A model generated the notes under the pieces. That model saw only the letters and a list, made by a program, of their open reading frames with translations, was not told the origin of the DNA and searched no databases. Both the position numbers and the translations under genes were made by a program. From Entomortierella parvispora E1425 (lineage: Eukaryota; Fungi; Mortierellomycota), in contig BQFW01000014.1 in the NCBI GenBank assembly GCA_020891255.1, forward strand, positions 744,001 through 808,000: a stretch of 64,000 nucleotides of DNA, read 5' to 3'. Numbering within the stretch: position 1 is the first letter of the stretch; every line of letters starts with the position of its first letter. Positions 29,149 through 64,000 of the stretch are shown one piece after another.

Positions 29149-32100
29149 ATGGCCCCTGTGCTCAGTCTGCCATTTGGCTTGCATCGTCAGCCAAAAAAGA
29201 CATTGGCTGGCCTGTCCTTCTTCATTGCCTTTGTCATTGTCAGGCGCCAACAAGCCCGAAACCGTCGCCGTGCTCGCCAGCAACAAAGAGCTGCTGCTGC
29301 TGGCGGTGCCGGTAGTTCTGAGAAGAGTCGTGACGGTTCGTCGCCTGTAAAGGCTCGGCGGGTCGGGGTTGACAAACACTTTTTGGAGCAGTTGAAAAAG
29401 TTGCTGCCCATCTGTATCCCTGGCTTTGCTAGCAAAGAAGCGGGTCTCTTGGCTGCCCTAGCCACGATCCTCATTGCAAGGTACGACTTGGCGTCGAGGG
29501 ACAGATTCGATCTGTCGGATCAGACTCTCTGGCCAGCAAAAAAAGATGAACGAGATCGAACTGACTCTGACTGACGTTGACTGCCTTGCTATTCTGTTTG
29601 TTAGAACTTGGCTCGATGTTTACTTTTCGGCGTTCAACGTAGGATATCCGTCCAAAACTGTGCTTGTGTCCTCCTGGGAAGGACTTTTGTTTGACAAAAT
29701 GGTTGCGTATCCATCTAAGCGACCCAACTGTTCTGCTATGTGATCAATAGGGTAGCGTTGTCAAAGCCATTGTGTCGCGCGATCGTAAAAAGTTCATTGC
29801 AAAAGCAGTTATCGAGTTTGGCATGATGATGGTAAGTTTTGTTCAGAAAGACCTCATCGGGAAGCATATGTTCTGTCTGTGCGGGAACAAAGGAAGACAA
29901 CCACAGCGCACAGTTCGCTTCAATGCAAAGAATGGCATGTGCAATCTCTTGGACATCAGTCGATCAATTTTTCCTCAATGTTCCTGAAAAACAAAAACTA
30001 ACTTGACTTTAGTGGCCGATGAGTATTGTCAACAACTCGCTCAAGTTCACGATCTCGGCTCTGGCCTTGTCCTTCCGTGAACGTCTGACAAAGGTAAGCT
30101 GTGTGATCAGAGAGTTGATTTTTAACAGATCGAGACCCAAAGAGCCAATTGCTGGAAATTAAAATCTCCTTGTTTTTCATGTTGCAGTTTGCACACGACC
30201 AGTACCTCGATGGGATCACATTCTACAAGATCTCCAACATCGACAATCGTATCCAGAATGCAGACCAGCTCTTGACACAGGACATCGACAAGTTCGCGGA
30301 GAATCTGAGTCATCTGTACTCGGACATTGCAAAGCCAATTGTGGACGTTATCATCTTTGCCATGAAGTTGGGCCAGGCCATGTAAGTCAAAGTCGTACCT
30401 TTGGTTCTTATGATCTTGAACTGTGAATCGATATGCCATCTAGGGTAGTCTTGGGCTCACGCTGTCGCTGTTGACTGATTTTTTTTTCGTCTTGATCTGC
30501 ATAGTGGAACTGAGGCACCCTTCTACATGATCGGTTACTTCTTCATGTCCGGAATCGCCCTTCGTGCCATTTCACCACCCTTTGGCAAATGTATGAGAAA
30601 ATCTGATGCGCTATATGTAGATCGAGAGTAGATATGGACTCGAGAGCTGACTTTTCGCATGTTTTAGATACCGCACAGGAACAAAAACTCGAGGGCGACT
30701 TCCGATTTACCCACGTACGTGATCAGAGTAGTGAACATGCTGGTGCTCCCATCATGATGGCAGACTACATGGACCGTTAGAACTCTGAAGCTAACAATCA
30801 TTCGCCACTCATATTCTCATCTTAGTCGAGAATTATTGCGCACTCGGAGGAGATTGCATTCTATAACGGAGCCGAGAGAGAGAAGGAGGGCGTCAACAAC
30901 AGCTTTGAGAAGGTATGGGACGATACGGCGCGAATTCCACCTGAAAATAGCCTATTTCTTACTCTTTTTTCTCATTCTTTTTTCATGAAGATTGTCCGTC
31001 ATGTCCGCAAGGTCTACACCATGCGCTTCGCAAATGGAATTCTTGACTCTGTTCTTGTCAAGTATTGCGCGACGATGACCGCTTATTAGTAAGTCCACAC
31101 GAAAGTCTGCATGATCCGAGCGGATGATTCCAAGAATTAGATGTTGACTCTTTCGTTTTTTTCCAGCCTGCTAGCTCGTCCAGTTTTCGACCCTGCCTAT
31201 GGTAACACCTCTCTTCCTCAGTGTAGTTCCTGAACAAGCCCAGCTCTCTGTAGTACTGATTTCATATTGATTCTTTCTTACTTAGCTACCGAACACATGG
31301 GACGAGTCTCTGCTGACCCCACAAAGATTGTCGAGGACTATTCTCGAAACTGTAAGTAACTCCTGGCCGGATCGCAGAGTGGAGTATATTTGGTCAAAGA
31401 CTGACTAGCTGTACTGTTTATACCACCATTCAGCTGGATATCTCGTAAATCTTTCTCAAGCTGTTGGTCGCCTTATTCTCGCTGGTCGTGATCTGACTCG
31501 CTTCGCAGGATACACAGTAAGACACGCATTCCTGTTAGAGAGGTTCGTTACAAGTTCTGCAGAAACCAACCGATCCTTTTTTTTCATGATTCATAGTCGC
31601 GGGTCTCTGAGCTCTTTGATGTTTTGGAAGATGTCAAGAAGGGACGCTACGAGCGTACTATGGTCGCTAAAGAGGACGGAACCTCGACTCAGAGCAAATG
31701 TGTGGACACGACTGGACTTAAGGGCAAGGTCGTCACTCAGGACGGAGTGATCATCTTTGAAAAGGTGCCCATTGTCACCCCCAACAACGATTTGTTGGTC
31801 AAGGAACTCTCTTTCAAGGTTACGACTGGAATGTCCTGTCTGATCTCAGGACCCAATGGCTGCGGAAAGAGTTCACTTTTCAGGATCTTGGGTGATCTTT
31901 GGCCATTGTTCGGGGGCACGGTCACGAAACCCCACCCTTCAAAGCTGTTTTACGTGCCTCAGAAGCCATATCTTGCCCTGGGTACATTTAGAGATCAAGT
32001 CATCTACCCAGATACAAAGGCACAGGCGGTCGCCAAGGGCTTTTCGGATGATAAGCTATTTGAGCTTTTGAGCATGGTCCACCTCGGCTACTTGATTGAG

Positions 32101-32505
32101 CGTGAAGGCGGCTGGGATTCCGTTCAGGATTGGGCCGATGTGCTCTCTGGAGGAGAGAAACAGCGCGTCGCGATGGCGCGTCTGTTTTACCACAAGCCTC
32201 AGTTTGCCATCCTGGATGAATGCACCTCTGCAGTCAGCATTGATGTTGAGGGTATCATGTACGAGCACGCCCAAAAGGTCGGCATCACCCTTTTCACGGT
32301 CTCTCATCGTCCATCCTTGATCCGATACCACGAATACCTCTTGCGATTCGATGGCGAGGGTCATTACCAGTTCCGAAAGCTTGGCCAGGAGGACTTGCAA
32401 CAGGCCGCGTTCGGCTTTGGCCACGGCAAATCAAAGAAGATGCGCAAGCTGGAAGATGAGGAGCGCGACAACGGAGACGAAGCCGACACGGAGACCAGCA
32501 TCTAG
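29149..32505 (+). CDS. Peroxisomal ABCD half-transporter (PMP70/ABCD3, PXA-like)
   Basis: 12 GT-AG introns reconstructed. NADQLLTQDI, EAA motif HSRIIAHSEEIAFYNG, GPNGCGKSSLFR, YVPQKPY, LSGGEKQRVAMARLFYHKPQFAILDECTSAVS. Confidence 0.92.
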
Positions 32506-38575: not shown

Positions 38576-40275
38576 CTAGTAAAGGGCGGCAAGGATCGCA
38601 ACGACAGCGACCAAGGCAGAGCTGGAGGAAGCAGCCGAGAGTGAGACGGCGGCGTTGGTGTTCTTGCCACTGTTGGCAACGCTTGGAGTGGCAGAGGTGC
38701 CAGAGGAGGTGGCAGACGCACTGCTGCCGGCACCGAGAACAAAGGTACCAGCACCCTCCTTGTAGGGCTTGGCATCGCTCAAGCACTGGGCAATGGGCTG
38801 CATGCTCAAGGTCTTGGTCTGGTAAGCAATGGGCAAGACACCGTTGATGGCGACATCAACCTCCTGAGGGAACAAGTCGTGCTGCAAGACAACGAAACCA
38901 GTGGTCATAGAGGGGATCTTGGTCAACCAAGTCTTGAAGGTGTCAACGACGGACTGGGGGGTGGCAGTACCGGCGGGGATGTTCCAGTCGTTGGTATCAA
39001 AGTCTTGGGTCCAGATGGCGGTCTTGTAGCCGAGCTGGGTAGCAATGTTACGGACACGGTTATCGACATCACCATAAGGAGGACGCCAGTAGAGAGGAGT
39101 GACACCGATGGTATCGAAAATGGCCTTCTCAGTCCACTTCAACTCGGCAACGACCTGCTCGTTGGTCAACGAGGTCATGGCGCTATGGGACCAGGTGTGG
39201 ATGGCAATGTGGTGTCCCTCCTTGTAAGCGCGCTTCAAGGTGTTGGGGAAGCTGATAGCGCGGGATCCGACAATGAAAAGGGTAGCCTTCTGGTTGTGGC
39301 TCAACAGGTTGTCATAGAGACGCTCCGAATCGGGCGAAGGACCATCTATTTTGTGTTTGTTACGTTGTGGTGTTAGTTTTTCTGTTTGTTCTTTTTTTTT
39401 GTTCTTTTGAAAGCGATGCCCCCGGAAAAAGAAGTGGCGTAAAAAGGGTCCTGCCGCTCCTTCCCAGGGGAGGTACCACAAGGAGTGTAGGGGTCCCTCG
39501 CCAACAAAGCCCAACGCCAAGATTAGATTTTCGATAATAAAAGTAAACTCAGCAAGTCATCTTCGACGGATTGAGGCACAATCGAGTTGCTGACAATCGT
39601 TGCATTTTTAGGTCTGGAACAGAGCGTTGGATTCAAACCCAGGGAAGATGTCCTTCTGCCCAAGGTTTGCTTTCCTCGGTGGGGTGACCCAGACACGCAC
39701 ACGGGTTTCTGAATGCAATCAACAAAAAAGAAAAAAGTTGGAGGGGAGGAGAAGGTGGGTACACCTGTACCGTGAAGGAAGGAGGAGGAGGAGGAGGAGG
39801 AGAAGAGAGATCAGGAACGAAGGGAGGACAATTGTGATGAAGAAAAGAATAAAAACCAGCAATTGGAGCTGTCAAAAAAAAAAAAAGGAATGTGAGCCTT
39901 ACCGTCATAAGTCAAGCCCCAGGTACCGGGCTTGGGGCAGCTGGTGATATCACCCTTGGCCTCGCACTTTTGGCAGGTCCACCAACACTGATCCTTGGGG
40001 ATGGTGGTCAGATCTGTGGGGCAGGCACCGTCCTTGGAGGGGGGATAGACGGGAGTCTTTGTGAAGTCCACGAGCTTGAGCCATTCCAGGACCATAGGAT
40101 CCTGGGTGAAGGGAGTGCAGTCCAAGGCAGGGTAGGAACCTTTAGCCACAGCCTGGTAGGTCTTGCTGCAGGTAGCAGTAGTCGCAGCGCGCTTCTCGAG
40201 ATCGTGCGAACCGTGCGCGAAGACAACGGAGAGGGAGAGGGAGAGGGCAAGGAGAGAGGGGAGGATCTTAACCAT
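38576..40275 (-). CDS. Chitin deacetylase (CE4), signal peptide plus predicted GPI anchor, copy 2
   Basis: Exons about 40275-39903 and 39344-38576. LTYDDGP, HTWSH, WRPPYGDVD, VLQHDLF motifs. Tandem paralogue of copy 1. Confidence 0.93.
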
Positions 40276-43643: not shown

Positions 43644-45228
<1,585 letters not shown>

Positions 45229-46717
45229 AGCAGAGCTAAAGAATCCATCACTATTTTTTTCTTTCGTCTGTTTGCACTCTTCCATTTCTCTTTTCTCCCA
45301 GCCAACTTTTATACGTTTTCCCACATTCCCACATTCCCCCCTTTCCCCTTCCCCGGACTTCCTACTAGTAACATTAAAAAGATCCTTTTACAAGCTTATT
45401 GCAACTTTTTTTAAAAAGAGTTCCCTTTATGTCTTTGCTTCTCGACCTACCTTTGGTTTGCGTGGATCATGGTTGAGGGCGCACAAGGCACATTCCACAT
45501 CAAAGAATGGTACCATCAAAAATAGAGAGCTCTAGTCTCGACACCTTCAATATCCTCTAAGAAAAAGTGTTTCGTACCAATGAAAGCGAGGAAAGTGCAG
45601 GTAAGGAGCACGAACTCCTTTTCTCTGTCGCATCAAGGATGGTCAAGACGTTCACGATGCCTGTTACGTGGTTTCTCATAATCCCTTCTTTCCCCTTTTG
45701 TTCTTCAGATAAGAAGGAGATGGAAGAAAAAGACTCGGGCAAGGCAAACAAACTACAAATACTTGGCGGAGCTGGCGCGTCAACAGCGCGCCTTATTTTA
45801 TTTTTTTTTTTTTTGCACGAGAACCATTCCGGAAAACTAGTTCGAGAGATGTGAATAGAATATCACGGAGACGGCATCCGACGTCGGTGTCTGGAGTGTG
45901 GATGAGTGCAGTAAGCTGACTACTCTGAAAGAAGGAGCTCACATCCTGAGATGCTCTCAAGACGGCGTCAAAGGGTTTGGAGTGATCGGCATCGACATGT
46001 CGCGTCAAAGGAGCAGGAGTCATTCATGAAGCGACAGGGTGGATCAAGACTCTTGCTTCTACGCGGTAATATTCTCTCTCTGTTTCTTCTCTATGGCGAT
46101 CGCCTACAAAAATGGCACGCAATGAGCTGCTGTGCTTTTCAGTGTAACTGTTGTAATTGTTGTTCTTTGTGGAATGTCTAACCTGTGGAATCGAAATCGC
46201 ATGTACAGTACAGTCAGTTCGCAGACAGCAGGACGCGAATCCATGCTGCCTGATTCGTTTCAACAGCTCCATGCTTCCGCGTAATGAAAGTAATACACCA
46301 TATACAAGGGATGATGACACATCATTATTGTTTATTTTTGTTTTTTTTCTGCGGATAGATAGACCCATGATAGAATGGAACTGAAAATGTAAAGGAGAGA
46401 AAGACAGACTGCAAGCTGTGATAGATGGTAATAGATGACGAGAGCGGTTTACCTCAAGGCTCCGTCTCCTATTGCTCGTTACTTTTTTCTTTAAAAAGCC
46501 CAATAGGCGGCACGGGCCAGCACGCCAGCTACCACACCTTTATCTTAATCGACTGACTTTTGCAAGGAACCGAAGAACAACTCATGAGGTTGAGACCCTA
46601 TCGCCACAAGTTAGCCCTCTGTGCTGTATTAGCTCTAGGGCTGCATTCACATGGAATCACAGCCAGCAGTCCACCACGACTGTCGGCACAGTCAAAGTCT
46701 CAGAGTACGAGTGCCAA

Positions 46718-48728
46718 CATGAGTGATTCAAAGTCGCAGCTCATGACCAGTGAAGCCATGGCCCAAAGCATTGTTGGATCCCCTCTCTTCTCACATTCTC
46801 TCTCTCTCTTTTTTCGACACAGCTTCATCGAACAAGGCGCCGTCACTCCAAAAGGGGCATCCTGCTGAGGATCTACTTTCCCTGCCCCTGGACCTGCTTT
46901 CAAATACCACCGCAACATTATTGAAGGAAGAACCTACGTACAAATGGAGGAACTGGGCAGGCAATCAGCACGCCAACCCCGCTCGGATATTCCACCCTCG
47001 AAGCATCAAGGATCTCTATTCAATTGTTCAAAAAGCAAAAAAGGATAACAAGCAGATTCGTTGCGGAGGAGCTGGCCATTCCTGGTCCTCAACAAGCGTT
47101 GTAAACGAAAATGGATTCCTTGTGGATATTTCAGACATGGGGAAGATCTATAAACCAGTCCACGTTGAAGACAACAACTGGACTGTAGAGATTGAAACCG
47201 GCGTCTTGATCCTGGACTTGGACAACTATTTGATGGACCATGATCCGCCACTCACTTTGCCCTCCAATGTCGTACTGGACTCGATCCGGTATGGAGGCGT
47301 CATCTCACTGGGCTGTCATGGAGCTGCAACTCATACGCGCACGATATCAGACCTTGTGACAGAGGTCAAAATTATCGACGCCAATGGAGTACTGCACTCG
47401 TTCTCGAAAGACAAGGATCCCATCGAGTTTTCAGCAGCGACCGTGAACCTTGGTCTTCTGGGTCCTATATACAGCTATACCATCCGGGTGGAGACAATGT
47501 TCAAACTTCTGATGGTACACCTTTCAGTGCAACTTGCTTTTTTTTTTTTTTTTTTTTTTTTGGCCCAACATCTACTCATAATGAACTTCGTCCATGGCTG
47601 TGATAGACCGACACGAATCCGCCTCTGAAGGACTACTTTAGTGACCCCGTAGTCAGCGGCCCGAAACTTAAGACCATGGTGCTTGGGAACGATCAGACCG
47701 AGCTGTTTTACTGGCCATTTAACAGTCCTGGCCTCAGTCCCGAGGGCGACAGCATCTGGATAAAGCAATGGCAGCGCACAGACCTTCCAGTGACGGAAAC
47801 GGCACTGTCGCATGGCCTGAAGAGCTTTCTGGAACCACTCGAGACCTCTTTTGGATATACTCTCTATGAGTACATGGCAGCCAACCCCATGTCGACACCA
47901 TTCGTGAACTATCTCATTCATTCAGCTTTGGTACATCAGGGACAACAGGTGTTGTACGCTCCCCACGGGATTCATTACCAGGCTGGAATCGACAACCTTC
48001 CCTGCCTTGATCTGGAAATGGCCTTCAAGACGGATGATAACTTTGAGAATGTGGTCAAAGCCTGGACATATGTCATTGACCTTGTAAGTTCAAGTGTTTA
48101 AAGGCAACTCTGACCGAGAACCTTGCTGCGGCCTTCACTTAAAAAGAGGATTGGGAAGGACATCTTGATGTCTAAACTGCTGGTCCCTATCGATTAGATC
48201 TACGAATACGCGCGTCGTGGAGAGTTTCCACTGAATCTGGCTCTGGAGATGCGTTTCGTCAAAGCATCCACCTTGGTCATGTCGAGCGCATACGACGAAG
48301 ATCCAGACGCTATATATTGTATGATCGAAGTGCTTTCGGTAGTAAATACCAAAGGGTTCGAAGAGTTTTCGGCCAAGGTTGCGCAGTATTGGATGGAAAA
48401 CTTTCAAGCAAGGTAAAAGTGAACTTTTGAGATCTTGGTTGATTCGTAGTTTTTGAGGCAGTTCTTTGTGTTCCCGAGTGTGTTTTTCCTAATCACTTCA
48501 ACTGTGGGACATGAATGGAATAGACCTCATTGGGCCAAGATGTGGGAACACGTTCCTGGTATAGTCCCCTATCTCCGGAGCGGCAATGGAAATCGTTACG
48601 ATCAGTTTGAGGCGGTTCGCAAAAAGTACGACCCCAACGGAATGTTTTTGACATCAACCTTTGCAGGTGTTCTTGGTCATAGCACTGACAAAGAGAAGGG
48701 CCAGACTCAGGGGAAGGCCAAGAGATAA
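46718..48728 (+). CDS. FAD-linked oxidase, D-arabinono-1,4-lactone / L-gulonolactone oxidase family
   Basis: WRNWAGNQ, IRCGGAGHSWS (covalent-FAD His position), GGVISLGCHG, SAATVNLGLLGPIY, LEMRFVK, RPHWAKM, KYDPNGMF. Start codon uncertain. Confidence 0.85.
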
Positions 48729-50127: not shown

Positions 50128-50257
50128 AACATTAGCCATTCCATTTTAAAAACTGGGGTTAGTTTTTGAACGCTAGCCATTCCAATCCCACGACGGAAAA
50201 ACTGGGGTTGGTTCTAAACGTTAGCCATTCTAGTTCTACCATGGGCAAACTGGGGGT
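50128..50257 (+). promoter_or_regulatory. Three-copy upstream repeat containing AAACTGGGG (SYGGRG-type) sites
   Basis: AACRYTAGCCATTC..(variable)..AAACTGGGG occurs three times about 380-510 bp upstream of the ATG at 50637. Confidence 0.5.
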
Positions 50258-50636: not shown

Positions 50637-53600
50637 ATGAGGCTCCTCGCATCGCGTCTTTCCGCCTATGTGGCCATTGCCAGCATCATCTGTCTCTCGA
50701 CAACCTTTGCTGACGATACCGCGGGCACAGATGATATCGGCACCCCAGATGTCGATGTCAATACTGGCGTCCCCGACGGGGACTTTAACGCTCTTCATAA
50801 CGGAGGCAAAAACCATCACCACCACCATCATCGCGCCAAGAACAAGTACAGATACGACAGTAAGTTTTCGCGATCTCCTTCCCCCCCCCCCCTCCCCCAA
50901 GGACCCCTTTCAATCACCCCGATCCATGCTATTGTCAACTGAATATTTTTGTTTCTAATATCCTCTCGTCATTTTTTTTCATGTTTATCCAATGGCTGCG
51001 TCATCTTCCTTGTAGAGACGGTGTTGAATCTTGTCTGCGACAACATCGTTATTGACAAGCTCGTGTGCAAGGTTAAACGTGCGCCGCCACCCATCGTGTA
51101 TGGACAGTCCTTCTTGGAGGAATTGCAGGCACCGTTTGCAGTCCCGGACGACGCTCCACTGGAAGCGCTCAATAACGGTGGCTGCAAGATTACCAATGTC
51201 TACATTAATATGGACAAGCCGTGTTCGAAAGATCTTCCACCTCTTTGCGCCGCCGCTATTGAAGAGGCAGCGAAGGAGTCCGAAGAATCGGAAGAACCCA
51301 AAGCATTGGAAGAACCCAAAGAATTGGAAGAACCCGAAGAATCGGAAGAACCCAAAGACTTTGAACCTGACACAGAGGTCGACGATAAAGATGAAGCCAG
51401 TAAAGACACAGCTGCTGAGACCAGTGAGGGTGTTGATACCGAGGTTGACACCGATCTGTGGAAGAAGAAGAACCACCACAAGCAGGATAAACACCACAGA
51501 CAAAGACACCATCATCACAAAAACATCCATCACCGCCACCACAAAAGACCCCACCACCACGGCCACAAGAAGCCAAAACATCCATACGAAAACCTTTGTG
51601 TTGCAGTGGGTGAATTTTGCGGTGATCAACTCTACGGGTGCAAGTTTGATTCCAAGACACGCTATCGGTGCACGGCCGTTGGCGAAAAGCCCGTGGTCGT
51701 CCAGCGCAACGCTGACAGCTGTGGTGGAACTGACAGTGGAAAATGCAAGTGCAAGTCCACAAAGCCTGTCTGCGGTGCCACACTTGACCCCGAATGCAAG
51801 GCAGATCTGAGTGCCATCTACCACTGTCCCAACGGCAATGGCACAAAGTACGAGATCCTCCAGATCTGCAGCCCTGGCACTCAGTGCACCACAGACAAGG
51901 ACGGAAATGCCTCTTGTGGTTCCAACACCTGCAACTGCTCCGGAAATAAGGAGATCTGCTCCGATGTTTTCCCCGAAAGATGCAACCTCCAAAAGAACTC
52001 CATCTACCGATGTACTCACACAGGAAAGCCAGAGTTTGTTAGTTCCTGTGGAGACGATAAGGTCTGCTTGACTCTTTCGGATGGCGCTATTTGCAGAGAC
52101 AAGGACTGCAAGTGCACCGTGGACGGCACTGTCTGCGGCACGGGCTTTCCCCCTTCGTGCCGTCTTCCAGCAACGAGCCTGTATAGCTGCAAGAAGGGCG
52201 AATCGCCAGTCCTGATCAAGGATTGTTCCCCTAACCAGTGCATCGCCTCAATTGCAACTGACACCGTGGCAAAGGACAGCTGCGCAGACCCATGCCTGTG
52301 TACATCCAAGGGCAATGTAAGTGACAAAACAAAGATGTGCGTCCTTCAGGTAGCCATAGGATCAAAACAAACATGCTGATATCCTGCACCTCTTTATACC
52401 TATCTCGGACGATTGTAGGTTTGCGGTTCCACCTTCCTTTCATCGTGCGGCCTAGACAAGGCAGCTCTTTATAGATGCGATGGGGCCGGTTCCAAACCAG
52501 TCTTTATTGAAGTATGTGAAAATGCCTGCGCTGTCAATGCTGGCGATGACTCCTGTGCCGGTAAATGCCAATGCCCAATCAGTGCCAGCGGAAAGCCGAT
52601 CTGTGGTGGCAGTCTCGATCCTTCTTGTGATGCAGACCCAACGGCCATATATCACTGTCCGAATGGCGATGGAACCCGCCCGCAGATTCTCAAGAAGTGT
52701 CTCCCTGGAACCCAGTGCACAAGCAACAACGGCAACGCCAACTGTGGCTACGCGACTTGTACCTGCACAAGCGACGTTGTAGCTTGCTCGGAGCAATTCC
52801 CAACCACCTGCAAGCTTGTTCCCAACAGTGTCTACAAGTGCAACTCCAGGAAGCTGCCTGAGCTTGTCAAGACCTGTTCCAATGCCGAAGAGTGCGTTGC
52901 TGTTATTGACGGTGCAATTTGTGCCAACAAGGACTGCAAGTGCGCTGATGATGGCAACTTCTGTGGTATCATTTTCCCGATCTCGTGCCGTCTCCCTGCC
53001 TCCACTATCTATAGCTGCAAGAAGGGAGAGGATCCTGTACCTATCAAGAACTGTGAACCTGGCACCTGCTCATCTTCTGCTGCGACCAACCAGGCTGGTG
53101 ATGTTTTTGGCGACGACAAATGTATTTCTGACTGCGTGTGTGTTGGCAGAGGAAAGGTATGAGCATCGGCCTTAAAAAAATCATGGTGCATGAAGCATCC
53201 ATCAACAACTTCCAGCGGCTGACAAAAAAAAAACACTTTTTTCATAGGTCTGTGGCTCTACCTTCTCCCCCAAGTGTGGATTGGATGCCAACCGCGTCTA
53301 CCAATGCGACGGTTCTGGCGCACACCCCAAACCACTTGATTTCTGTAAAGACAAGTGCATTTCTCAAGCTGGTGGTGCCATTTGCTCTGATCCCAGCGAC
53401 AAATGTTTGTGCCCAATCAATGCCAGCGGAAAGCCGGTCTGTGGTGGCAGTCTAGATCCTTCTTGTGATGCAGATCCCACGGCCATCTATCATTGTCCGA
53501 ATGGCGACGGATCCCGTCCCGAGATTCTCAAGAGGTGTCTCCCTGGAACGCAATGCACAAACCACCATGGCGATGCCAACTGCGGCTACACAACTTGTAC

Positions 53601-56600
53601 CTGCACAGGCGACGTTGTGGCTTGCTCGGAGCAATTCCCACCTCTCTGTAAGCTTGTTCCCAACAGCGTCTACAAGTGCAACTCCAGGAAGCTGCCTGAG
53701 CTTGTCAAGACCTGTTTCAATGCCGAAGAGTGCGTTGCTGTTATTGATGGTGCATTTTGTGCCAACAAGGATTGCAAGTGCGCCGATGATGGCAACTTCT
53801 GTGGTATCATTTTCCCGATCTCGTGCCGTCTCCCTGCCTCCACTATCTATAGCTGCAAGAAGGGACAAGATCCCGTACCTATCAAGAACTGTGAACCTGG
53901 CACTTGTTCGTCTTCTGCTGCAACCAACCAGGCTGCTGATGTCTTTGGCGACGACAAATGTATTTCTGATTGCGTGTGTGTAGGCAGAGGAAAGGTACGT
54001 GTCTTGAAATAATCTCGGACATCTTCATATCCAGTAGACCCTCGTAGACTGACAAGAAGTCTCTCTTTCTTGAACAGGTCTGTGGCTCCACCTTCTCCCC
54101 CAAGTGTGGATTGGATGCCAACCGCATCTACCAATGCGACGGTTCTGGCGCACACCCCAAACCACTTGATACCTGTAAAGACAAGTGCATTTCTCAAGCT
54201 GGTGGTGCCATTTGCTCTGATCCCAGCGACAAATGTTTGTGCCCCATCAGTGCCAGCGGAAGGCCAGTCTGTGGTGGCAGTCTAGATCCTTCTTGTGATG
54301 CAGATCCCGCGGCCATCTATCATTGTCCGAATGGCGATGGATCCCGTCCCGAGATTCTCAAGAAGTGTCTCCCTGGAACGCAATGCACAAACTACAATGG
54401 CGATGCCAACTGCGGCTACACAACTTGTACCTGCACAGGCGACGTTGTGGCTTGCTCGGAGCAATTCCCACCTCTCTGTAAGCTTGTTCCCAACAGCGTC
54501 TACAGGTGCAGCTCCAACAAGGTGCCTGAGCTTGTCAAGACCTGCGCAAGTGCCGAAGAGTGCGTTGCTGTTATTGATGGTGCAATTTGTGCCAACAAGG
54601 ACTGCAAGTGCGCTGATGATGGCAACTTCTGTGGTATCATTTTCCCGATCTCGTGCCGTCTCCCTGCCTCCACTATCTATAGCTGCAAGAAGGGAGAGGA
54701 TCCTGTACCTATCAAGAACTGTGAACCTGGTACCTGCTCATCTTCTGCTGCAACCAACCAGGCTGGTGATGTTTTTGGCGACGACAAATGTATTTCTGAC
54801 TGCGTGTGTGTTGGTAGAGGAAAGGTATGAGCATCGGCCTTAAAAAAATCATGCTGTATGAAGCATCCATCAACAACTTCCAGCGGCTGACAAAAAAAAA
54901 AACACTTTTTTCATAGGTCTGTGGCTCTACCTTCTCCCCCAAGTGTGGATTGGATGCCAACCGCGTCTACCAATGCGACGGTTCTGGCGCACACCCCAAA
55001 CCACTTGATTTCTGTAAAGACAAGTGCATTTCTCAAGCTGGTGGTGCCATTTGCTCTGATCCCAGCGACAAATGTTTGTGCCCCATCAGTGCCAGCGGAA
55101 GGCCAGTCTGTGGTGGCAGTCTAGATCCTTCTTGTGATGCAGATCCCGCGGCCATCTATCATTGTCCGAATGGCGACGGATCCCGTCCCGAGATTCTCAA
55201 GAAGTGTCTCCCTGGAACGCAATGCACAAACCACCATGGCGACGCCAACTGCGGCTACACAACTTGTACCTGCACTGGAGACGTTGTGGCTTGCTCGGAG
55301 CAATTCCCGCCTCTTTGTAAGCTTGTTCCCAACAGTGTCTACAAGTGCAACTCCAGGAAGCTGCCTGAGCTTGTCAAGACCTGTTCCAATGCCGAAGAGT
55401 GCGTTGCTGTTATTGATGGTGCAATTTGTGCCAACAAGGATTGCAAGTGCGCCGATGATGGCAACTTCTGTGGTATCATTTTCCCGATTTCTTGCCGTCT
55501 CCCTGCTTCGACCATTTATAGCTGCAAGAAGGGACAAGATCCTGTACCTATCAAGAACTGTGAACCTGGCACTTGTTCGTCTTCTGCTGCGACCAACCAG
55601 GCTGGCACTGTTTTTGGAGACGACAAATGTATCACTGACTGCGAGTGCGTCTGCGTGAGCAAAGGAAAGGTATGTGCATCAGTCTTCAACAGGAATGCAC
55701 GAAAGATCTGCTATGGATCTTGGATACTGACAAAAAAACTCTTTCTTCAATAGGTCTGTGGCTCCACCTTCTCCTCAAAGTGTGGTTTGGATGCAAACAC
55801 CATCTACCAATGCGACAATACCGGCACAGTTCCCAAGCCAATTGAGATTTGTAAAGAGGACTGTATCAATCAAGCCGGTGGTGCTTTTTGCTCAGATCCC
55901 AAGGACAAATGCCTGTGCCCGATCAGTGCCAACGGAAAGCCAGTCTGTGGTAGCAGTCTTGATCCGTCCTGCAATGCCGAGCCCACGTACATCTATCATT
56001 GTCCCAACGGCGATGGAACCCGTCCCGAGGTCCTTGTGAGGTGTCACTCTGGAATGTTATGTAAGCGGGACAGTGATGGCAATGCCGAGTGCGTCCCCCC
56101 TGACGATCCCACACATCCCCCTACAATCCGCCCCACAGACCCTCCAACTACGACCACCTCGTCCATTGCACCTGATCCCACGGTTGGGCCTGACTGCCTC
56201 CATCTGATTAAGCCCATCAAGGATCTGATCGACACCGCCATTGCAACCATCGACGCTTTCCCAGTGCCGGAGGAGGTAGCGGAGCTCCTCAAGTTGGCTT
56301 TGGGCAGTACCTTGAAAGACTACTTGAACAATGGTGCCGGTGGTATTGGAGTAGCAGCAGCAACGTTGGCGGTCACGCTTCCTCGGGTCGTTGAGATCCT
56401 CCAAAACGCTCAGGGTTCATTGGATGATTTGGGCCTCACGAAACCATTCCTTGATGTTCTTTATCACACATTGAATCAGTTCGCCAAACTCTTTGGTGAT
56501 TTCGCCGCTTGTACGGGAGCCAAACCGGATTGTACTGGATTGGTAGTTATTACCGGATATACAGTCAAGATCAGTTGGCCCATCCTGAAGAAAATGCTCG

Positions 56601-59600
56601 CTATCAAGGTTCCACGTAAGGACTACCCTATTGATATATCTTGTCCGGTTTTTTTTTCTCTCTCTATCGGGCTAACAATGAGGGACTCCCCTCTTTTTTG
56701 TTATGTCTGCGTAGCAACGGCCATTCTATTTGATTTGCTGCAGCCCACCATCGATGGCATTTCCAACAACTTGATCAAAGGCAATGATGCGGGCATTTCT
56801 ACCTTCTTGGACATGCTTTCCAGTCCACTCGTTGCTCCTTTGAAAACCTTGCCAAAGATCGAGGCAATTTTCAATATCCTCAAGCCGATCCTCCAGCTTG
56901 TCAAGGACTGCAAAGAGTCGGAATGGAAAACCAAGACCCCTGATCCTACTGTCCCGCCCACAAATCCTCCTACGGACCCACCCACAAACGTCCCTACAAG
57001 CCGTCCTACAGATCCACCCACAAACATCCCTACAAGCCGTCCTACAGATCCACCCACGAACGTCCCCACAAGTGGTCCCACCGATCCACCAACGAACATC
57101 CCCACAAGTCGCCCTACAGACCCACCAACAAACATCCCAACCGCAACAACTCCAATTGTACCCACTCCGACAACTTCGCCCAACTGTCTCGCCCTGATCA
57201 AGCCAATTACAGATTTGATCCAGACAGTCATCGGTCTGATTGATACTTTCCCAATGCACGCGGAGGTTGCTCAACTTCTCAAGTTGGCCTTGGGCAGTAA
57301 CCTGACGGACTATTTGAATAGCGGTGTTGATGGCGTAGGACAGGTGGCAGCGACGTTGGCGGTCACGCTTCCCCAGATCGTAGCCGTCCTTCAAGGTGCT
57401 ACAAACTCTCTGGATATCTTGGGTCTTACCAAACCCTTCCTCGATGTTCTGTATAGTACATTGAATCAATTCGCCGCACTCTTTGGTGACTTTGCAGCCT
57501 GTACGGGAGCCAAACCGGACTGCACAGGACTAGTTGTGATTGCAGGATACGCGATCAAGATCGGATGGCCTATTCTGAGAGCCGATCTTGCTATCAAGGC
57601 GCCACGTAAGACCATTGCCTCTTGAGATTGTCTTGTCCGGTTTGTTTCTGCGACATGTGGCTGACAACGACTTTTTTTTTTTTTTTTTGTAATTACATAG
57701 CGTCGGTCGCCTTGTTCATCTTGTTGCAACCTCTGGTGGATAGTATTACGGCTAACCTGATCGCGGGCAACGATGCTGGCGTCACGGACTTTTTGAACAT
57801 GCTCATCAGCCCGCTTGCAGCTCCATTGAAAGCATTGCCACTGGTCGGTCCCATTTTCGACATCCTCACACCTATCCTGAACCTCATCAAGAACTGCAAC
57901 ACTGTCCTACCCACAAACATCCCTACAGACCCCCCAACAAGCCTTCCTACCAATGTTCCTACGGACCCACCAACAAACATCCCCACAAGTCGCCCTACAG
58001 ACCCACCAACAAACATCCCAACCGCAACAACTCCAATTGTACCCACTCCGACAACTTCGCCCAACTGTCTCGCCCTGATCAAGCCAATTACAGATTTGAT
58101 CCAGACAGTCATCGGTCTGATTGATACTTTCCCAATGCACGCGGAGGTTGCTCAACTTCTCAAGTTGGCCTTGGGCAGTAACCTGACGGACTATTTGAAT
58201 AGCGGTGTTGATGGCGTAGGACAGGTGGCAGCGACGTTGGCGGTCACGCTTCCCCAGATCGTAGCCGTCCTTCAAGGTGCTACAAACTCTCTGGATGTCT
58301 TGGGTCTTACCAAACCCTTCCTCGATGTTCTGTATAGTACATTGAATCAATTCGCCGCACTCTTTGGTGACTTTGCAGCCTGTACGGGAGCCAAGCCCAA
58401 CTGCACTGGACTAGTTGTGATTGCAGGATACGCGATCAAGATCGGATGGCCTATTCTGAGAGCCGATCTTGCTATCAAGGCGCCACGTAAGACCATTGCC
58501 TCTTGAGATTGTCTTGTCCGGTTTGTTTCTGCAACATGTGGCTGACAACGACCTTTTTTTTTTTTTTTTGCAATTATAGCATCGGTCGCCTTGTTCATAT
58601 TGTTGCAACCTCTGGTGGACAGTATTACGGCCAACCTGATCGCGGGCAACGACGCTGGCGTTACGGACTTTTTGAACATGCTGATTAGCCCGCTTGCAGC
58701 TCCATTGAAAGCATTGCCACTGGTCGGTCCCATTTTCGACATCCTCACACCTATCCTGAACCTCATCAAGAATTGCAGCACTGTCCTACCCACAAATCTT
58801 CCTACAAATCTTCCTACAAACATCCCTACAGACCCCCCAACAAGCCTTCCTACCAATGTTCCTACGGATCCACCAACAAACATCCCCACAAGTCGCCCTA
58901 CAGACCCACCAACATTTGTCCCAACCGCAACAACCGCAATTGTACCTACTCCGACGGCTTCGCCCAACTGTCTCGCCCTGATCAAGCCAATTACAGATTT
59001 GATCCAGACAGTCATCGGTCTGATTGATACTTTCCCAATGCACGCGGAGGTTGCTCAACTTCTCAAGTTGGCCTTGGGCAGTAACCTGACGGACTATTTG
59101 AATAGCGGTGTTGATGGCGTAGGACAGGTGGCAGCGACGTTGGCGGTCACGCTTCCCCAGATCGTAGCCGTCCTTCAAGGTGCTACAAACTCTCTGGATG
59201 TCTTGGGTCTTACCAAACCTTTCCTCGATGTTCTGTATAGTACATTGAATCAATTCGCCGCACTCTTTGGTGACTTTGCAGCCTGTACGGGAGCCAAACC
59301 GGACTGCACAGGACTAGTTGTGATTGCAGGATACGCGATCAAGATCGGATGGCCTATTCTGAGAGCCGATCTTGCTATCAAGGCGCCACGTAAGACCATT
59401 GCCTCTTGAGATTGTCTTGTCCGGTTTGTTTCTGCAACATGTGGCTGACAACGACCTTTTTTTTTTTTTTTGTAATTACATAGCATCGGTCGCCTTGTTC
59501 ATATTGCTGCAACCTCTGGTGGACAGTATTACGGCTAACCTGATCGCGGGCAACGACGCTGGCGTTACGGACTTTTTGAACATGCTCATCAGCCCGCTTG

Positions 59601-60570
59601 CAGCTCCATTGAAAGCATTGCCACTGGTCGGTCCCATTTTCGACATCCTCACACCTATCCTGAACCTCATCAAGAACTGCAACACTGTCCTACCCACAAA
59701 CATCCCTACAGACCCCCCAACAAGCCTTCCTACCAATGTTCCTACGGACCCACCAACAAACATCCCCACAAGTCGCCCTACAGACCCACCAACATTTGTC
59801 CCAACCGCAACAACCGCAATTGTACCTACTCCGACGGCTTCGCCCGACTGTCTCGCCCTGATCAAGCCAATTACAGATTTGATCCAGACAGTCATCGGTC
59901 TGATTGATACTTTCCCAATGCACGCGGAGGTTGCTCAACTTCTCAAGTTGGCCTTGGGCAGTAACCTGACGGACTATTTGAATAGCGGTGTTGATGGCGT
60001 AGGACAGGTGGCAGCAACGTTGGCGGTCACGCTCCCCCAGATCGTAGCCGTCCTTCAAGGTGCTACAAACTCTCTGGATGTCTTGGGTCTTACCAAGCCC
60101 TTCCTCGATGTTCTGTATAGTACATTGAATCAATTCGCCACACTCTTTGGTGACTTTGCAGCCTGTACGGGAGCCAAGCCCAACTGCACTGGACTAGTTG
60201 TGATTGCAGGATACGCGATCAAGATTGGATGGCCTATTCTGAGAGCTGACCTTGCTATCAAGGCACCACGTAAGATCCCATCGCCAATCCAGTTTGCTGT
60301 AGACCGCCCTCCTGATTGACTGACAACGAACCTTCTTTTTTTCCTGGTTGTGAATATATAGCGTCGGTGGCCTTGTTCATTTTATTGCAGCCTTTAGTCG
60401 ACAGCATCACTGCCAACATGATCGCGGGCAACGATGCAGGCATCACGGACTTTTTGAACATGCTCGTCAGCCCGCTCGCTGCTCCATTGAGAGCGTTGCC
60501 ACTGGTTGGTCCTATCTTCAACATCCTTACGCCGATCATAAACCTCGTCAAGAACTGCCCTAAATCCTAG
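50637..60570 (+). CDS. Giant (~2950 aa) secreted modular repeat protein of unknown family
   Basis: Exons 50637-50859, 51016-52316, 52419-53156, 53248-53994, 54078-54824, 54917-55669, 55754-56615, 56715-57605, 57701-58486, 58580-59389, 59484-60269 and 60362-60570 total 8853 nt and join in one frame with GT-AG introns. Signal peptide MRLLASRLSAYVAIASIICLSTTFA. Confidence 0.85.
51586..56095 (+). repeat. Tandem ~830-840-bp exon+intron units, each encoding four 8-Cys modules
   Basis: Exon starts at 52419, 53248, 54078, 54917 and 55754 (periods 829, 830, 839, 837 bp) with near-identical sequence. Confidence 0.95.
56180..60570 (+). repeat. Five tandem ~880-1000-bp units encoding a helical domain plus PT-rich minisatellite linker
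   Basis: CLALIKPITDLIQTVIG..FGDFAACTGAKPDCTGL..KAP|PSVALF..NLIKNC is repeated. Linkers are built from PTSRPTDPPTN 36-bp-type units. Confidence 0.95.
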
Positions 60571-61673: not shown

Positions 61674-64000
61674 ATGGAGAGCAGGATCACGCGTCGCACA
61701 AGTGCCTCGACCGCAGACACTCGGAACACCTCCACTTCAGCGACACAGTCTCTGGAAGATGCACAACCTGTAGGAGCTTCAGCGGCTACAGGCAGGGGAA
61801 GTCGCTCTCCAAGGAAACCGCGTCGTGGAACAGGACGCCCTAGAGGTCGCCCTCGTGGAAGTACGCGTAAATCTCCAAAGAATGAGGGCCGTCCCATTCC
61901 TGAGGAGGACAATGCACCTCGCCCACTGGCTCAGGAAGTTAGCGATTCGCCAGATTCCGGCAGCGATGACGAAGATCAGGCTCATTCAACAAAAGGCGCA
62001 TCTGTGCAACAATCTCAGACGGCCCAGGAAGTAACACAGGAAGAGGACTCTGGCGCAGCTAGAAGTGGTTCTCGGATGTCTGATGTTCAGGTCTACGAGG
62101 AAATGGATGATCTGCCATTCATATCGCCGTCATTACCGCCAACTTTCGTTTCGAAGAGTGTTACCAATCTTCAGGAGGATACTCTGTCGACAACAGCCTC
62201 CGTTTCAAAGGCTCAAAGTGTACAATCCAAAGGATTTTTGGACGAGGATGTCTATAACGAGCTCTCCATTGGAGGCACGGAGCGGATAGCGGAGGTATTC
62301 CTTCACAAAAGAGGCATCTTGGAGGGAACACTGCCAGCAAGTTCAGCAAACATCGACGCGACCCCTGGCTCATCGCTACCCAAAAAACGAAAGCTATCGA
62401 CTTCAATATCGAAACTACCCAACCAACCTCCACAGAGCGAAAAAGGAAAGAATGTACAGCAGCAACAAGAAACGGAGCAAACCACCGCACCTTCATCCGC
62501 TGCATCGACTTCAACTAGCGCACCTGGACAGAAATCATACCAGCTCTCAGATTTGGTGGCGTCTGTTAATTCATACGGCCCTGAACTTACCACAGCGTTG
62601 CGAAACCTGGAGGCGACTCCAAAGCCAGTACAGATCACTGTGCCGCATCCAACCATCCAGCCCAAACAGCCTGCTGGACTCTTGGATATGGATCCACCTT
62701 CGACCCGCTTTCATCACCCTTGCATCTTTTCACACGACAACCGCTCCATGCTCACCCGAGACGAGCATAGGCGGATGCTCATGTACGAGGCTGTGGTTCG
62801 TAAGCGACTTCCGGGAATGTCAGCTGAAGACAAGGCTCTCTGTGCTGAAATTCAAGCAAAGGTGGAAGAAGAGCGCCAGAGAGTTTCTCAGTGGAATTCA
62901 GCTACCGTTCGATCCAGGATATCCAACTACTTCAACCCAGCGATCCGAGATGCCCTAGAAATGAAGTGGTGTCGAGGGAGAACCCGAGTGAAGGAGGATT
63001 ATCCTCAAAACTATGGATTTCTTCATACTGTTGGATTGCGGCGACCAGGCGTGACCGGAGTCAAAGAGCCCTTCATGACTCGAGCAGTACCGAAGAAGGT
63101 CGAGGATAGCACAAGAGGTGACACTTTGACCGCGGATCAACGACAACGCGGCTTGTTGCACAGAACAGGAGATATTTGCCCCGTCTCTCTGGCAAAGCCA
63201 ATATGGCCAACAGATGAAAACGGAGTACCTTTCGAAAAGACAATTGACGTGGATGATCGATATTGGCGAATGAGCGCAACAACCGCTGAACAGCCTACTA
63301 CAGAAAACGTCAAGACAGGACGAGATAAACGACGCGGGCAGTTACCTGTCAAGAGACAAGTAGTGGCGGTGTCGAACGATCCTCTCGCTCGACAATTTGT
63401 GAGGGAGCAGAATATCACTATCGCCATTGGTGCAAGTGCCATGGTCGCATTAGCAAAAACTCTTCCAAATTTGACGGCCGAGTGGGAGATACCTGTCAAA
63501 GTAGTGATGGAGCCAGATGAGGAAGGTAAGTAACCGAAGGCACGAACCATCTGGCAATTCTATGATGACTTGCATGTCTAACTTTTTGTAATATATGATA
63601 GGGAATATGAAGAAGAGAGTCTACGTCGATAAGCCTCTGATACCAAAGCGAATGACAAGATTGGCTGCGACCCAGCAGTTTTATGATGGTGTTTGTAAGA
63701 AACTTGCACTCATAGGCTTGTCGTCCACGGATGTCAGCGTGCTTTCACAACCTGCACAACGATCAACAGCGTTAAGTTCTGAGCTCACAGAGCCGCAAAA
63801 ACTACGAGTGATCGCCAACGATGCTGTCGAACCCTCACAGTCTTCCGTAGTTTCAGAAGCTGACTCGCAAACAACGGAATCACCTGCAACGGCGTCAACC
63901 TCGGTCTCTACTGATAAGCAGGGAAGTGAAGAGGGGACTCTTGGAAGTCACACGGAAACATTGGGCGCACCCAGTTGCCATAATCTCGAATATTCCCTGT
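61674..64000 (+). CDS. ICE2/NARG2-like protein (little elongation complex subunit 2-like) with AT-hook; 3' end outside window
   Basis: 619-aa first exon with GRPRGRPRG. EWEIPVKVV..|..KRVYVDKPLIPKRMT..QQFYD spans intron 63526-63601 and resembles the remembered NARG2 motif WEIPV..IYINSPLP..MT..QIFH. Confidence 0.55.

Follow-up and report, generated by a model that had tools for sequence, protein, structure and literature searches.

Several described kinds of extracellular protein share individual features with the product of the gene analysed here, a long repeat-protein gene of the fungus Entomortierella parvispora E1425 (Mortierellomycota; assembly GCA_020891255.1, contig BQFW01000014.1). The gene lies within the 64,000-nt stretch at positions 744,001 to 808,000 of this contig (forward strand), which we refer to as the window and in which all coordinates below are counted. 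Peritrophin-type and other tandem CBM14 proteins (insect peritrophic-matrix proteins, Cladosporium Avr4, tachycitin, Der p 23) are secreted, as the product of this gene appears to be, and consist of repeatable disulfide-rich beta modules of 50-65 amino acids (aa) that alternate with Pro/Thr-rich, mucin-like linkers. CBM14 modules contain six conserved cysteines, forming three disulfides. CBM19 (PF03427), a component of fungal GH18 chitinases, is likewise a fungal Cys-rich module of ~60 aa. HsbA/Mp1p proteins (PF12296) and hydrophobins are secreted fungal proteins of hydrophobic character; in Mp1p, Ser/Thr-rich linkers connect helical ligand-binding domains arranged in tandem, and hydrophobins are small beta proteins of about 100 aa. 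Finally, Neurospora crassa NCW-3, a CBM52 protein bound non-covalently to the wall, is comparable in its lack of a glycosylphosphatidylinositol (GPI) signal, its Cys-rich module, its repeats and its O-glycosylated regions.

The Entomortierella protein, in which a long array of small Cys-rich modules is followed by an array of larger, predicted helical domains, would group with the modular secreted wall or adhesion proteins, a known kind, but differs from each of the systems above. Its small modules carry eight cysteines, including a C-x-C pair, against the six of CBM14, and they have no match to PF01607; we know of no peritrophin with a hydrophobic helical array. Nor do they match the CBM19 hidden Markov model (HMM), and no catalytic domain is attached to them. 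The larger domains, of ~206 aa with eight helices and four cysteines, have no Pfam or structural match to HsbA/Mp1p, and the hydrophobin pattern C-CC-C-C-CC-C is absent, as there are no adjacent Cys pairs and no Pfam hydrophobin match. The 'CG' and 'YxC' motifs cited for CBM52 (bioRxiv 10.64898/2026.05.09.718313) both occur in the small module; the resemblance to CBM52 proteins is limited to these two short motifs, in a protein of other architecture and scale.

Gene model and growth of the arrays

The gene occupies 50637-60570 on the + strand, where 12 exons and 11 introns give one 8,853-nt coding sequence whose sole stop codon is terminal and which encodes 2,950 aa (Table 1), as the original prediction had proposed. 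All 11 introns are canonical (GT...AG, 83-156 nt) and connect stop-free + strand segments in three frames. Their donors are GTAAGT, GTAAGA, GTATGA, GTACGT, GTATGT or GTAAGG, and a CTRAY branch-point-like motif is visible in most of them (CTGAC in eight, CTAAC in intron 7), introns 1 and 2 having only CTAAT/CTGAT in this role; the 3' ends of most introns consist of a T-rich tract followed by YAG. The 12-exon model is very probably correct, with splicing predicted rather than observed. In a bacterial-style list of open reading frames (ORFs), the gene is split into about 10 pieces, as had been noted. Retention of intron 7 would insert 33 residues into helical domain 1 and leave the ORF intact.

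Both arrays are divided into exon cassettes of constant phase. Exons 3-6 (phase 0-0) contain exactly four Cys modules each, and each of exons 8-11 (phase 1-1) covers the final third of one helical domain, the linker behind it and two thirds of the domain that follows, counted from its start. At the DNA level, identity between exon-plus-intron cassettes is 84-93% within the Cys array and 86-97% within the helical array, and identity in introns 3/5 and in introns 8/9/10 amounts to 95-97% (97% for introns 3 versus 5), from which we conclude that the arrays grew as whole cassettes were duplicated in tandem. Ratios of nonsynonymous to synonymous substitution rates (dN/dS) among the cassettes range from 0.07 to 0.31, which indicates that their frames are under purifying selection. 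The repeats in both arrays are not due to chance. No additional copies or paralogues were found outside the gene within the 64-kb window.

In DNA contigs of a second isolate carrying the same organism label, the gene is kept at ~90-93% identity. The two versions differ by an in-frame length difference of 561 nt (the second isolate skipping 51713-52275), equivalent to about three Cys modules, and by an in-frame 12-nt insertion of the second isolate at 51431, in the acidic repeats. The indels in intron 1 (+2, -6 and -5 nt) are not all multiples of three; the frame kept in exons together with the non-triplet indels in this intron fits the coding/intron assignment. The comparison suggests that the number of Cys modules varies between isolates, a lead rather than proof, as the contigs of the second isolate are short-read assemblies.

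The boundary between the two arrays falls inside exon 7, within the continuous ORF 55787-57625, so that no splice is needed to connect them; the same ORF reads through intron 7 because this intron is in frame and stop-free. This continuity, together with homologues in other genera that contain both domain types, agrees with the single gene spanning both arrays that had been predicted, and the locus is almost certainly one gene rather than two. Two separate genes, or a decaying or unexpressed repeat locus, would be compatible with a gene and splicing pattern read from DNA alone and with related proteins that are all computational predictions themselves, many of them partial. We consider this extremely improbable, given 2,950 codons free of stops, the low dN/dS of the cassettes, an array boundary within one exon, the architecture and intron positions shared with other genera, and a frame preserved in the second isolate despite both length differences.

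Predicted secretion and the eight-cysteine modules

The protein is likely, with good confidence, to be secreted, as judged from the residues of its N-terminus, which combines a basic n-region with a 14-residue hydrophobic core and a TFA|DD c-region; the homologues begin with an N-terminus of the same signal-peptide-like kind. The parts that follow stand in the order originally described, every element being present: signal peptide, His6 patch, small Cys domain, acidic stretch, His/Lys-rich stretch, Cys modules and helical domains. Several of these elements recur in the homologues. His-rich patches are found near the N-terminus of P0051, P0057 and P0061, the small Cys domain, which has no Pfam match, is conserved among family members, and an equivalent His/Lys-rich stretch precedes the first Cys module. 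Within the acidic stretch, Tandem Repeats Finder detects EEPK-type repeats of 9/18 nt at 51280-51358. The conserved acidic/His-rich pair may respond to metal or pH, or may represent a pro-region that is processed.

At the other end, the protein terminates in ...NLVKNCPKS, three residues past the last domain Cys, with no hydrophobic tail, as had been stated. Neither a GPI-attachment signal nor a transmembrane segment is found at the C-terminus, and family members end likewise. The original prediction of secretion is supported by the signal-peptide-like N-terminus and the lack of a C-terminal anchor.

The predicted Cys array contains 174 strictly spaced cysteines in aa 268-1620. Counted from this spacing, there are 22 modules, one degenerate first module and 21 regular ones, in agreement with the earlier estimate of about 22. 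Their consensus is x-C-G-x2-F-P-x2-C-x7-Y-x-C-x3-G-x2-P-x5-C-x2-G-x2-C-x6-A-x-C-x4-C-x-C, with conserved aromatic residues at F6 and Y18. Pfam searches with whole exons (E ≤ 1) and with 39 single modules (E ≤ 10) returned no match to CBM_14 (PF01607) or CBM19 (PF03427), nor did any module match the CBM52 family at E ≤ 10. Sequence-profile searches of the PDB, with helical, super-repeat and single-module profiles, found nothing below E 0.1. Kazal, EGF, hydrophobin and Kex2-repeat identities were also considered and rejected for the Cys module, which has other Cys spacing, no HMM support for any of them and no regular dibasic sites; in all 2,950 aa there are four K/R-R sites of the kind processed by Kex2, none recurring between modules.

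In an AlphaFold2 model of the four-module exon 4 (mean predicted local distance difference test, pLDDT, 76.6), each module consists of one short turn of helix and, after it, four short strands. Among the AFDB clusters, this model retrieves four 'CBM19 domain-containing' fungal proteins and one chitin-binding type-2 protein (E 5e-5 to 4e-3), and the ESM Atlas shape search adds one GH18+CBM_19 cluster row at a template-modelling score (TM-score) of 0.25; CBM19-named proteins of Kickxellomycotina/Zoopagomycota are among the best AFDB and Atlas fold rows. The TM-scores to the four CBM19-named cluster representatives are only 0.17-0.27, a further difference from CBM19; low whole-model scores are expected because the modules are arranged like beads on a string. 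Single modules superimpose on CBM14-type chains with a root-mean-square deviation of 2.5-4.6 Å over 47-55 residues, and CBM_14 clusters make up 46 of 100 named language-model neighbors of the module. The agreement of four weak searches leads us to favor slightly a CBM14/19-like fold for the module. That the module also binds chitin or another wall polysaccharide is possible but rather doubtful.

The modules may alternatively not bind carbohydrate at all, and instead serve as rigid spacers, as protein-binding units similar to EGF, EB or TNFR-Cys modules, or as antimicrobial units similar to defensins or bubble protein; the whole would then be an extracellular matrix/adhesion protein or an antimicrobial protein with other ligands. 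This is the direction in which the eight cysteines, compared with the six of CBM14, would point, as would a 'Bubble protein' cluster among the language-model neighbors, a resemblance to the antifungal protein PAFC, sub-threshold Pfam matches to the EB module in 7 of 39 modules (best E 0.007), and EGF, TNFR-Cys and LDLR arrays among the Foldseek rows. The EB, bubble-protein and EGF/TNFR/LDLR matches are, however, likewise non-significant, no other class recurs nearly as often as chitin-binding modules over the four different searches, and the lack of regular dibasic sites between modules makes release of individual peptides unlikely. We regard both a non-carbohydrate role of the modules and the corresponding identity of the whole protein as unlikely.

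Hydrophobic helical domains

The C-terminal array comprises five predicted all-alpha domains of 206 aa each, close to the ~210 aa originally estimated, and Pro/Thr linkers of 33-91 aa. Only a linker is recognized by Pfam in the whole protein: that of exon 8 matches the PT repeat (PF04886) with 44 bits against a cut-off of 26.2 (E 1.5e-11), a low-complexity match that is uninformative on function. The domains are strongly hydrophobic. Their grand average of hydropathy (GRAVY) is 0.87-0.89 in domains 2-5 and 0.44-1.27 over the family, and several 19-residue windows in them exceed 1.6 on the Kyte-Doolittle scale. Four cysteines are nearly invariant, two of them being the first and last residues of the domain and the other two bounding a CTGAxxxC loop that connects helices 4 and 5. 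An AlphaFold2 model has eight helices (pLDDT 82; predicted TM-score, pTM, 0.74); it was built from a 30-row alignment whose first row is a domain of Linnemannia gamsii (52-59% identical), chosen because the domains of the window are split by introns.

With the helical domain as query, Foldseek found no significant match in the PDB, in AFDB clusters or in the ESM Atlas (best E 0.16), and the sole TM-score of 0.54 in the structure searches is to an unnamed protein. In the language-model atlas, scores reach at most 0.59 with no coherent family, one of the two queries having included the translated in-frame intron and the PT linker. An internal duplication into two four-helix halves, hinted at by half-domain matches in VIA, was rejected after hhalign of the halves returned a probability of 8.8%. 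Module by module, then, the Pfam, AlphaFold and Foldseek comparisons yielded no high-confidence match to any well-characterized family. The earlier statement that neither module is recognizable as a named family stands for Pfam, which finds only the PT linker, and for the PDB profiles, which find nothing; for the Cys module it is refined by the weak resemblance to CBM14/CBM19.

On composition, the helical domain may bind lipid or hydrophobic surfaces, which we offer only tentatively. The original prediction of a hydrophobic-ligand array is in keeping with the extreme hydrophobicity of the domains but finds no backing in a match to Mp1p/HsbA or any other lipid-binding fold. An HsbA/Mp1p-like lipid-binding bundle (PF12296) was rejected as a candidate, with no Pfam match and no such fold among the best 50 Foldseek PDB rows or the best 50 VIA rows.

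The same hydrophobic windows could indicate domains that act on membranes, being secreted in soluble form and then inserted into the membranes of competitors or prey in the manner of alpha-pore-forming proteins, with the Cys array used for targeting. Helical pore-forming domains are similar in size to the ~200-aa domain here, ClyA and a large number of membrane helical bundles appear among the Foldseek rows of low probability, and VIA aligns each domain half to four-helix bundles, including connexin, tetraspanin and pannexin. Against this, no structural match rises above noise, and colicin, Bcl-2, Cry and saposin-type folds are not among the matches listed. Moreover, one to five domain copies fixed behind glycosylated linkers would suit display better than insertion, and the two probable disulfides per domain would impede the large rearrangement that insertion demands. 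We therefore consider membrane activity very unlikely.

It is more improbable still that the array is embedded in a membrane rather than secreted, as part of a polytopic protein with a large extracellular Cys-rich ectodomain. A GRAVY of ~0.9 and six or more hydrophobic windows per domain would fit such a topology, and eight helices would place the domain ends and the loop between the second and third cysteines (helices 4-5) on the outer side together with the linkers, consistent with the Cys positions. However, Asp, Lys, Asn, Gln and Pro occur throughout the helices, several of which are only 16-19 residues long, and the predicted domain is compact, as its pTM indicates. Five domains would moreover require ~40 membrane spans between mucin-like linkers, an arrangement that we know of in no membrane protein.

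Relatives, surroundings and proposed role

A word-indexed search of 5.8 billion proteins with a 612-aa ORF as query returned true matches only from Linnemannia and Gryganskiella, the rest being matches to the PT linker. An exhaustive HMMER profile search with the helical domain over 1.84 billion representatives identified 36 proteins at E ≤ 1e-3 (E values 1e-224 to 1e-4). Those whose source is named or was looked up are all from Mortierellaceae (Mortierella, Podila, Haplosporangium, Dissophora, Linnemannia and Gryganskiella). The Cys-array profile (E values 1e-165 to 1e-38) likewise retrieved Mortierellaceae only, adding Mortierella alpina, Linnemannia schmuckeri and Gamsiella, and only two proteins, including one of Benniella, were retrieved with the N-terminal region. 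By these searches, the family is found only in Mortierellaceae and appears to be lineage-specific and never studied. The protein of the window is at most 68% identical to any relative, which indicates that its own genome is seemingly not represented among the annotated proteins.

Both domain types are present in one predicted protein in P0005 (Gryganskiella) and in P0002, P0030, P0047, P0049, P0053, P0057, P0059 and P0061, the latter eight sharing the domain order; counting those whose source was looked up, these homologues come from at least four genera. As predicted from their sequences, the order is fixed: signal peptide, small Cys domain, acidic stretch, His/Lys-rich stretch, one or more eight-Cys modules, a Thr/Pro linker and, at the end, one or more four-Cys helical domains. 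P0002, a complete protein of 838 aa from L. gamsii, has three introns at the same positions as the window gene, one just before the NLVCD motif and a phase-1 'FP|PS' intron in each helical domain. In most relatives, a single Cys module is combined with one or two helical domains; with 22 and five, the window gene is the most expanded member seen here.

The predictions for P0031, P0033, P0035 and P0036 stop at or run into the conserved phase-1 intron after '...KFP', in line with the original concern that automated annotation mishandles such genes. In public genomes, mis-annotation or truncation probably affects many members of the family.

Table 1. Coordinates of the parts of the repeat-protein gene, its introns and neighboring features of the window
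Feature	Position	Strand	Remarks
Start codon and signal-peptide-like N-terminus	50637-50711	+	aa 1-25; GRAVY 1.37
HHHHHH patch	50814-50831	+	aa 60-65; exon 1; spliced translation
Small Cys domain	51016-51287	+	aa ~75-165; NLVCD...MDKPC motifs
Acidic stretch	51288-51458	+	aa 166-222; net charge -20
His/Lys/Arg-rich basic stretch	51459-51587	+	aa 223-265; 40% His, 23% Lys; net charge +13
Array of 22 eight-Cys modules	51594-56095	+	aa 268-1617; ~59-66 aa each; exons 2-7
First Pro/Thr linker	56096-56194	+	exon 7, between arrays; Pro 33%, Thr 24%
Helical domain 1	56195-56911	+	aa 1651-1856
Helical domain 2	57185-57897	+	aa 1948-2153; GRAVY 0.89
Helical domain 3	58066-58776	+	aa 2210-2415
Helical domain 4	58969-59680	+	aa 2480-2685
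Helical domain 5	59849-60558	+	aa 2742-2947
C-terminal PKS and stop codon	60559-60570	+	spliced translation
Intron 1	50860-51015	+	156 nt, GTAAGT...TAG, phase 1
Intron 2	52317-52418	+	102 nt, GTAAGT...TAG
Intron 3	53157-53247	+	91 nt, GTATGA...TAG
Intron 4	53995-54077	+	83 nt, GTACGT...CAG
Intron 5	54825-54916	+	92 nt, GTATGA...TAG
Intron 6	55670-55753	+	84 nt, GTATGT...TAG
Intron 7	56616-56714	+	99 nt, in frame, stop-free; inside helical domain 1
Intron 8	57606-57700	+	inside helical domain 2
Intron 9	58487-58579	+	inside helical domain 3
Intron 10	59390-59483	+	inside helical domain 4
Intron 11	60270-60361	+	inside helical domain 5
48-bp tandem repeat	50148-50255		intergenic; 2.2 copies, 78% matches; ~400 nt upstream of start codon
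ABC-transporter ATPase ORFs, phosphatidylinositol-specific phospholipase C (PI-PLC) with EF-hands, leucyl-tRNA synthetase pieces	10207-13010, 31624-32505, 15327-16331, 444-2216	+, +, -, +	
CE4 polysaccharide deacetylase ORF	38576-39520	-	Polysacc_deac_1 (chitin-deacetylase-type), E 3e-30
Ras-family small GTPase fragment	44717-45535	+	Pfam Ras, E 1.5e-19
FAD_binding_4 oxidase	46750-48101	+	Pfam
619-aa ATG-started ORF	61674-63533	+	just downstream; no Pfam match; Ser/Thr/Pro/Arg-rich N-terminus

The neighboring genes (Table 1) are ordinary and unrelated to the repeat-protein gene; those at the L. gamsii locus are different, and the two loci show no synteny. Upstream, the small GTPase, which we take from its sequence motifs to be Ran-like (Pfam labels it only 'Ras family'), and the FAD oxidase look like ordinary multi-exon housekeeping genes. 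A wall-related gene cluster was considered and rejected: its sole candidate is the CE4 ORF, 11 kb upstream with unrelated genes between, which we do not count as evidence.

For the protein as a whole, we tentatively propose, at a confidence that falls slightly short of probable, that it is secreted, carries O-glycans and is bound to the wall or to a substrate, where it would present an array that binds hydrophobic ligands or is active at interfaces; this function is read from composition and weak fold resemblance. After secretion, the eight-Cys modules would attach the protein multivalently to polysaccharide, either the chitin/chitosan of the fungus's own wall or an external chitinous substrate, and the Pro/Thr linkers would be O-glycosylated stalks on which the five hydrophobic eight-helix domains are held out. 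These domains would bind lipids or other hydrophobic ligands, or form a hydrophobic, interface-active surface. Mortierellomycotina are described as chitinolytic soil saprotrophs whose secretomes are enriched in chitin-binding modules (PMC9391592). The role as a host/prey-interaction effector that had also been suggested is not supported by any evidence in this analysis.

Several points weigh against this proposal. Both the splicing and the protein itself are predicted from sequence, the AlphaFold2 model of the Cys modules was built from only 11 sequences, and searches of Pfam and of PDB profiles connect the modules at sequence level with neither CBM_14 nor CBM_19 nor any other carbohydrate-binding family. 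In the structure comparisons, the antifungal protein PAFC and an archaeal fusexin domain score as well as or better than the chitin-binding chains, and small disulfide-rich beta modules can resemble each other without kinship.

Mortierellaceae are oleaginous, arachidonate-producing fungi, common in soil and root-associated, and are used as an industrial source of arachidonic acid. A more far-reaching possibility, which we think quite unlikely, is that the helical domain is a new extracellular fold and the answer of the Mortierellaceae to hydrophobins or lipid carriers; the array, anchored to the chitin/chitosan wall by a lineage-specific offshoot of CBM14/19, would coat hyphae or capture or export lipids, with copy number varying by in-frame gain and loss of cassettes. 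One survey, which sampled a single Mortierellales genome, detected no canonical hydrophobin in it, although it refers to one reported in M. elongata (bioRxiv 10.1101/2022.08.19.504535); the absence found in that survey makes a lineage-specific hydrophobic surface protein conceivable, as speculation.

If the proposed reading is true, the Mortierellaceae hold an undescribed family of extracellular proteins composed of two domain families that are absent from Pfam and the PDB. The helical domain would then be a candidate for a new class of lipid-binding or surface-active protein, and the Cys module would extend the superfamily of chitin-binding modules. The exon model presented here provides a template for re-annotating the relatives that are currently filed as partial or truncated 'hypothetical proteins'.

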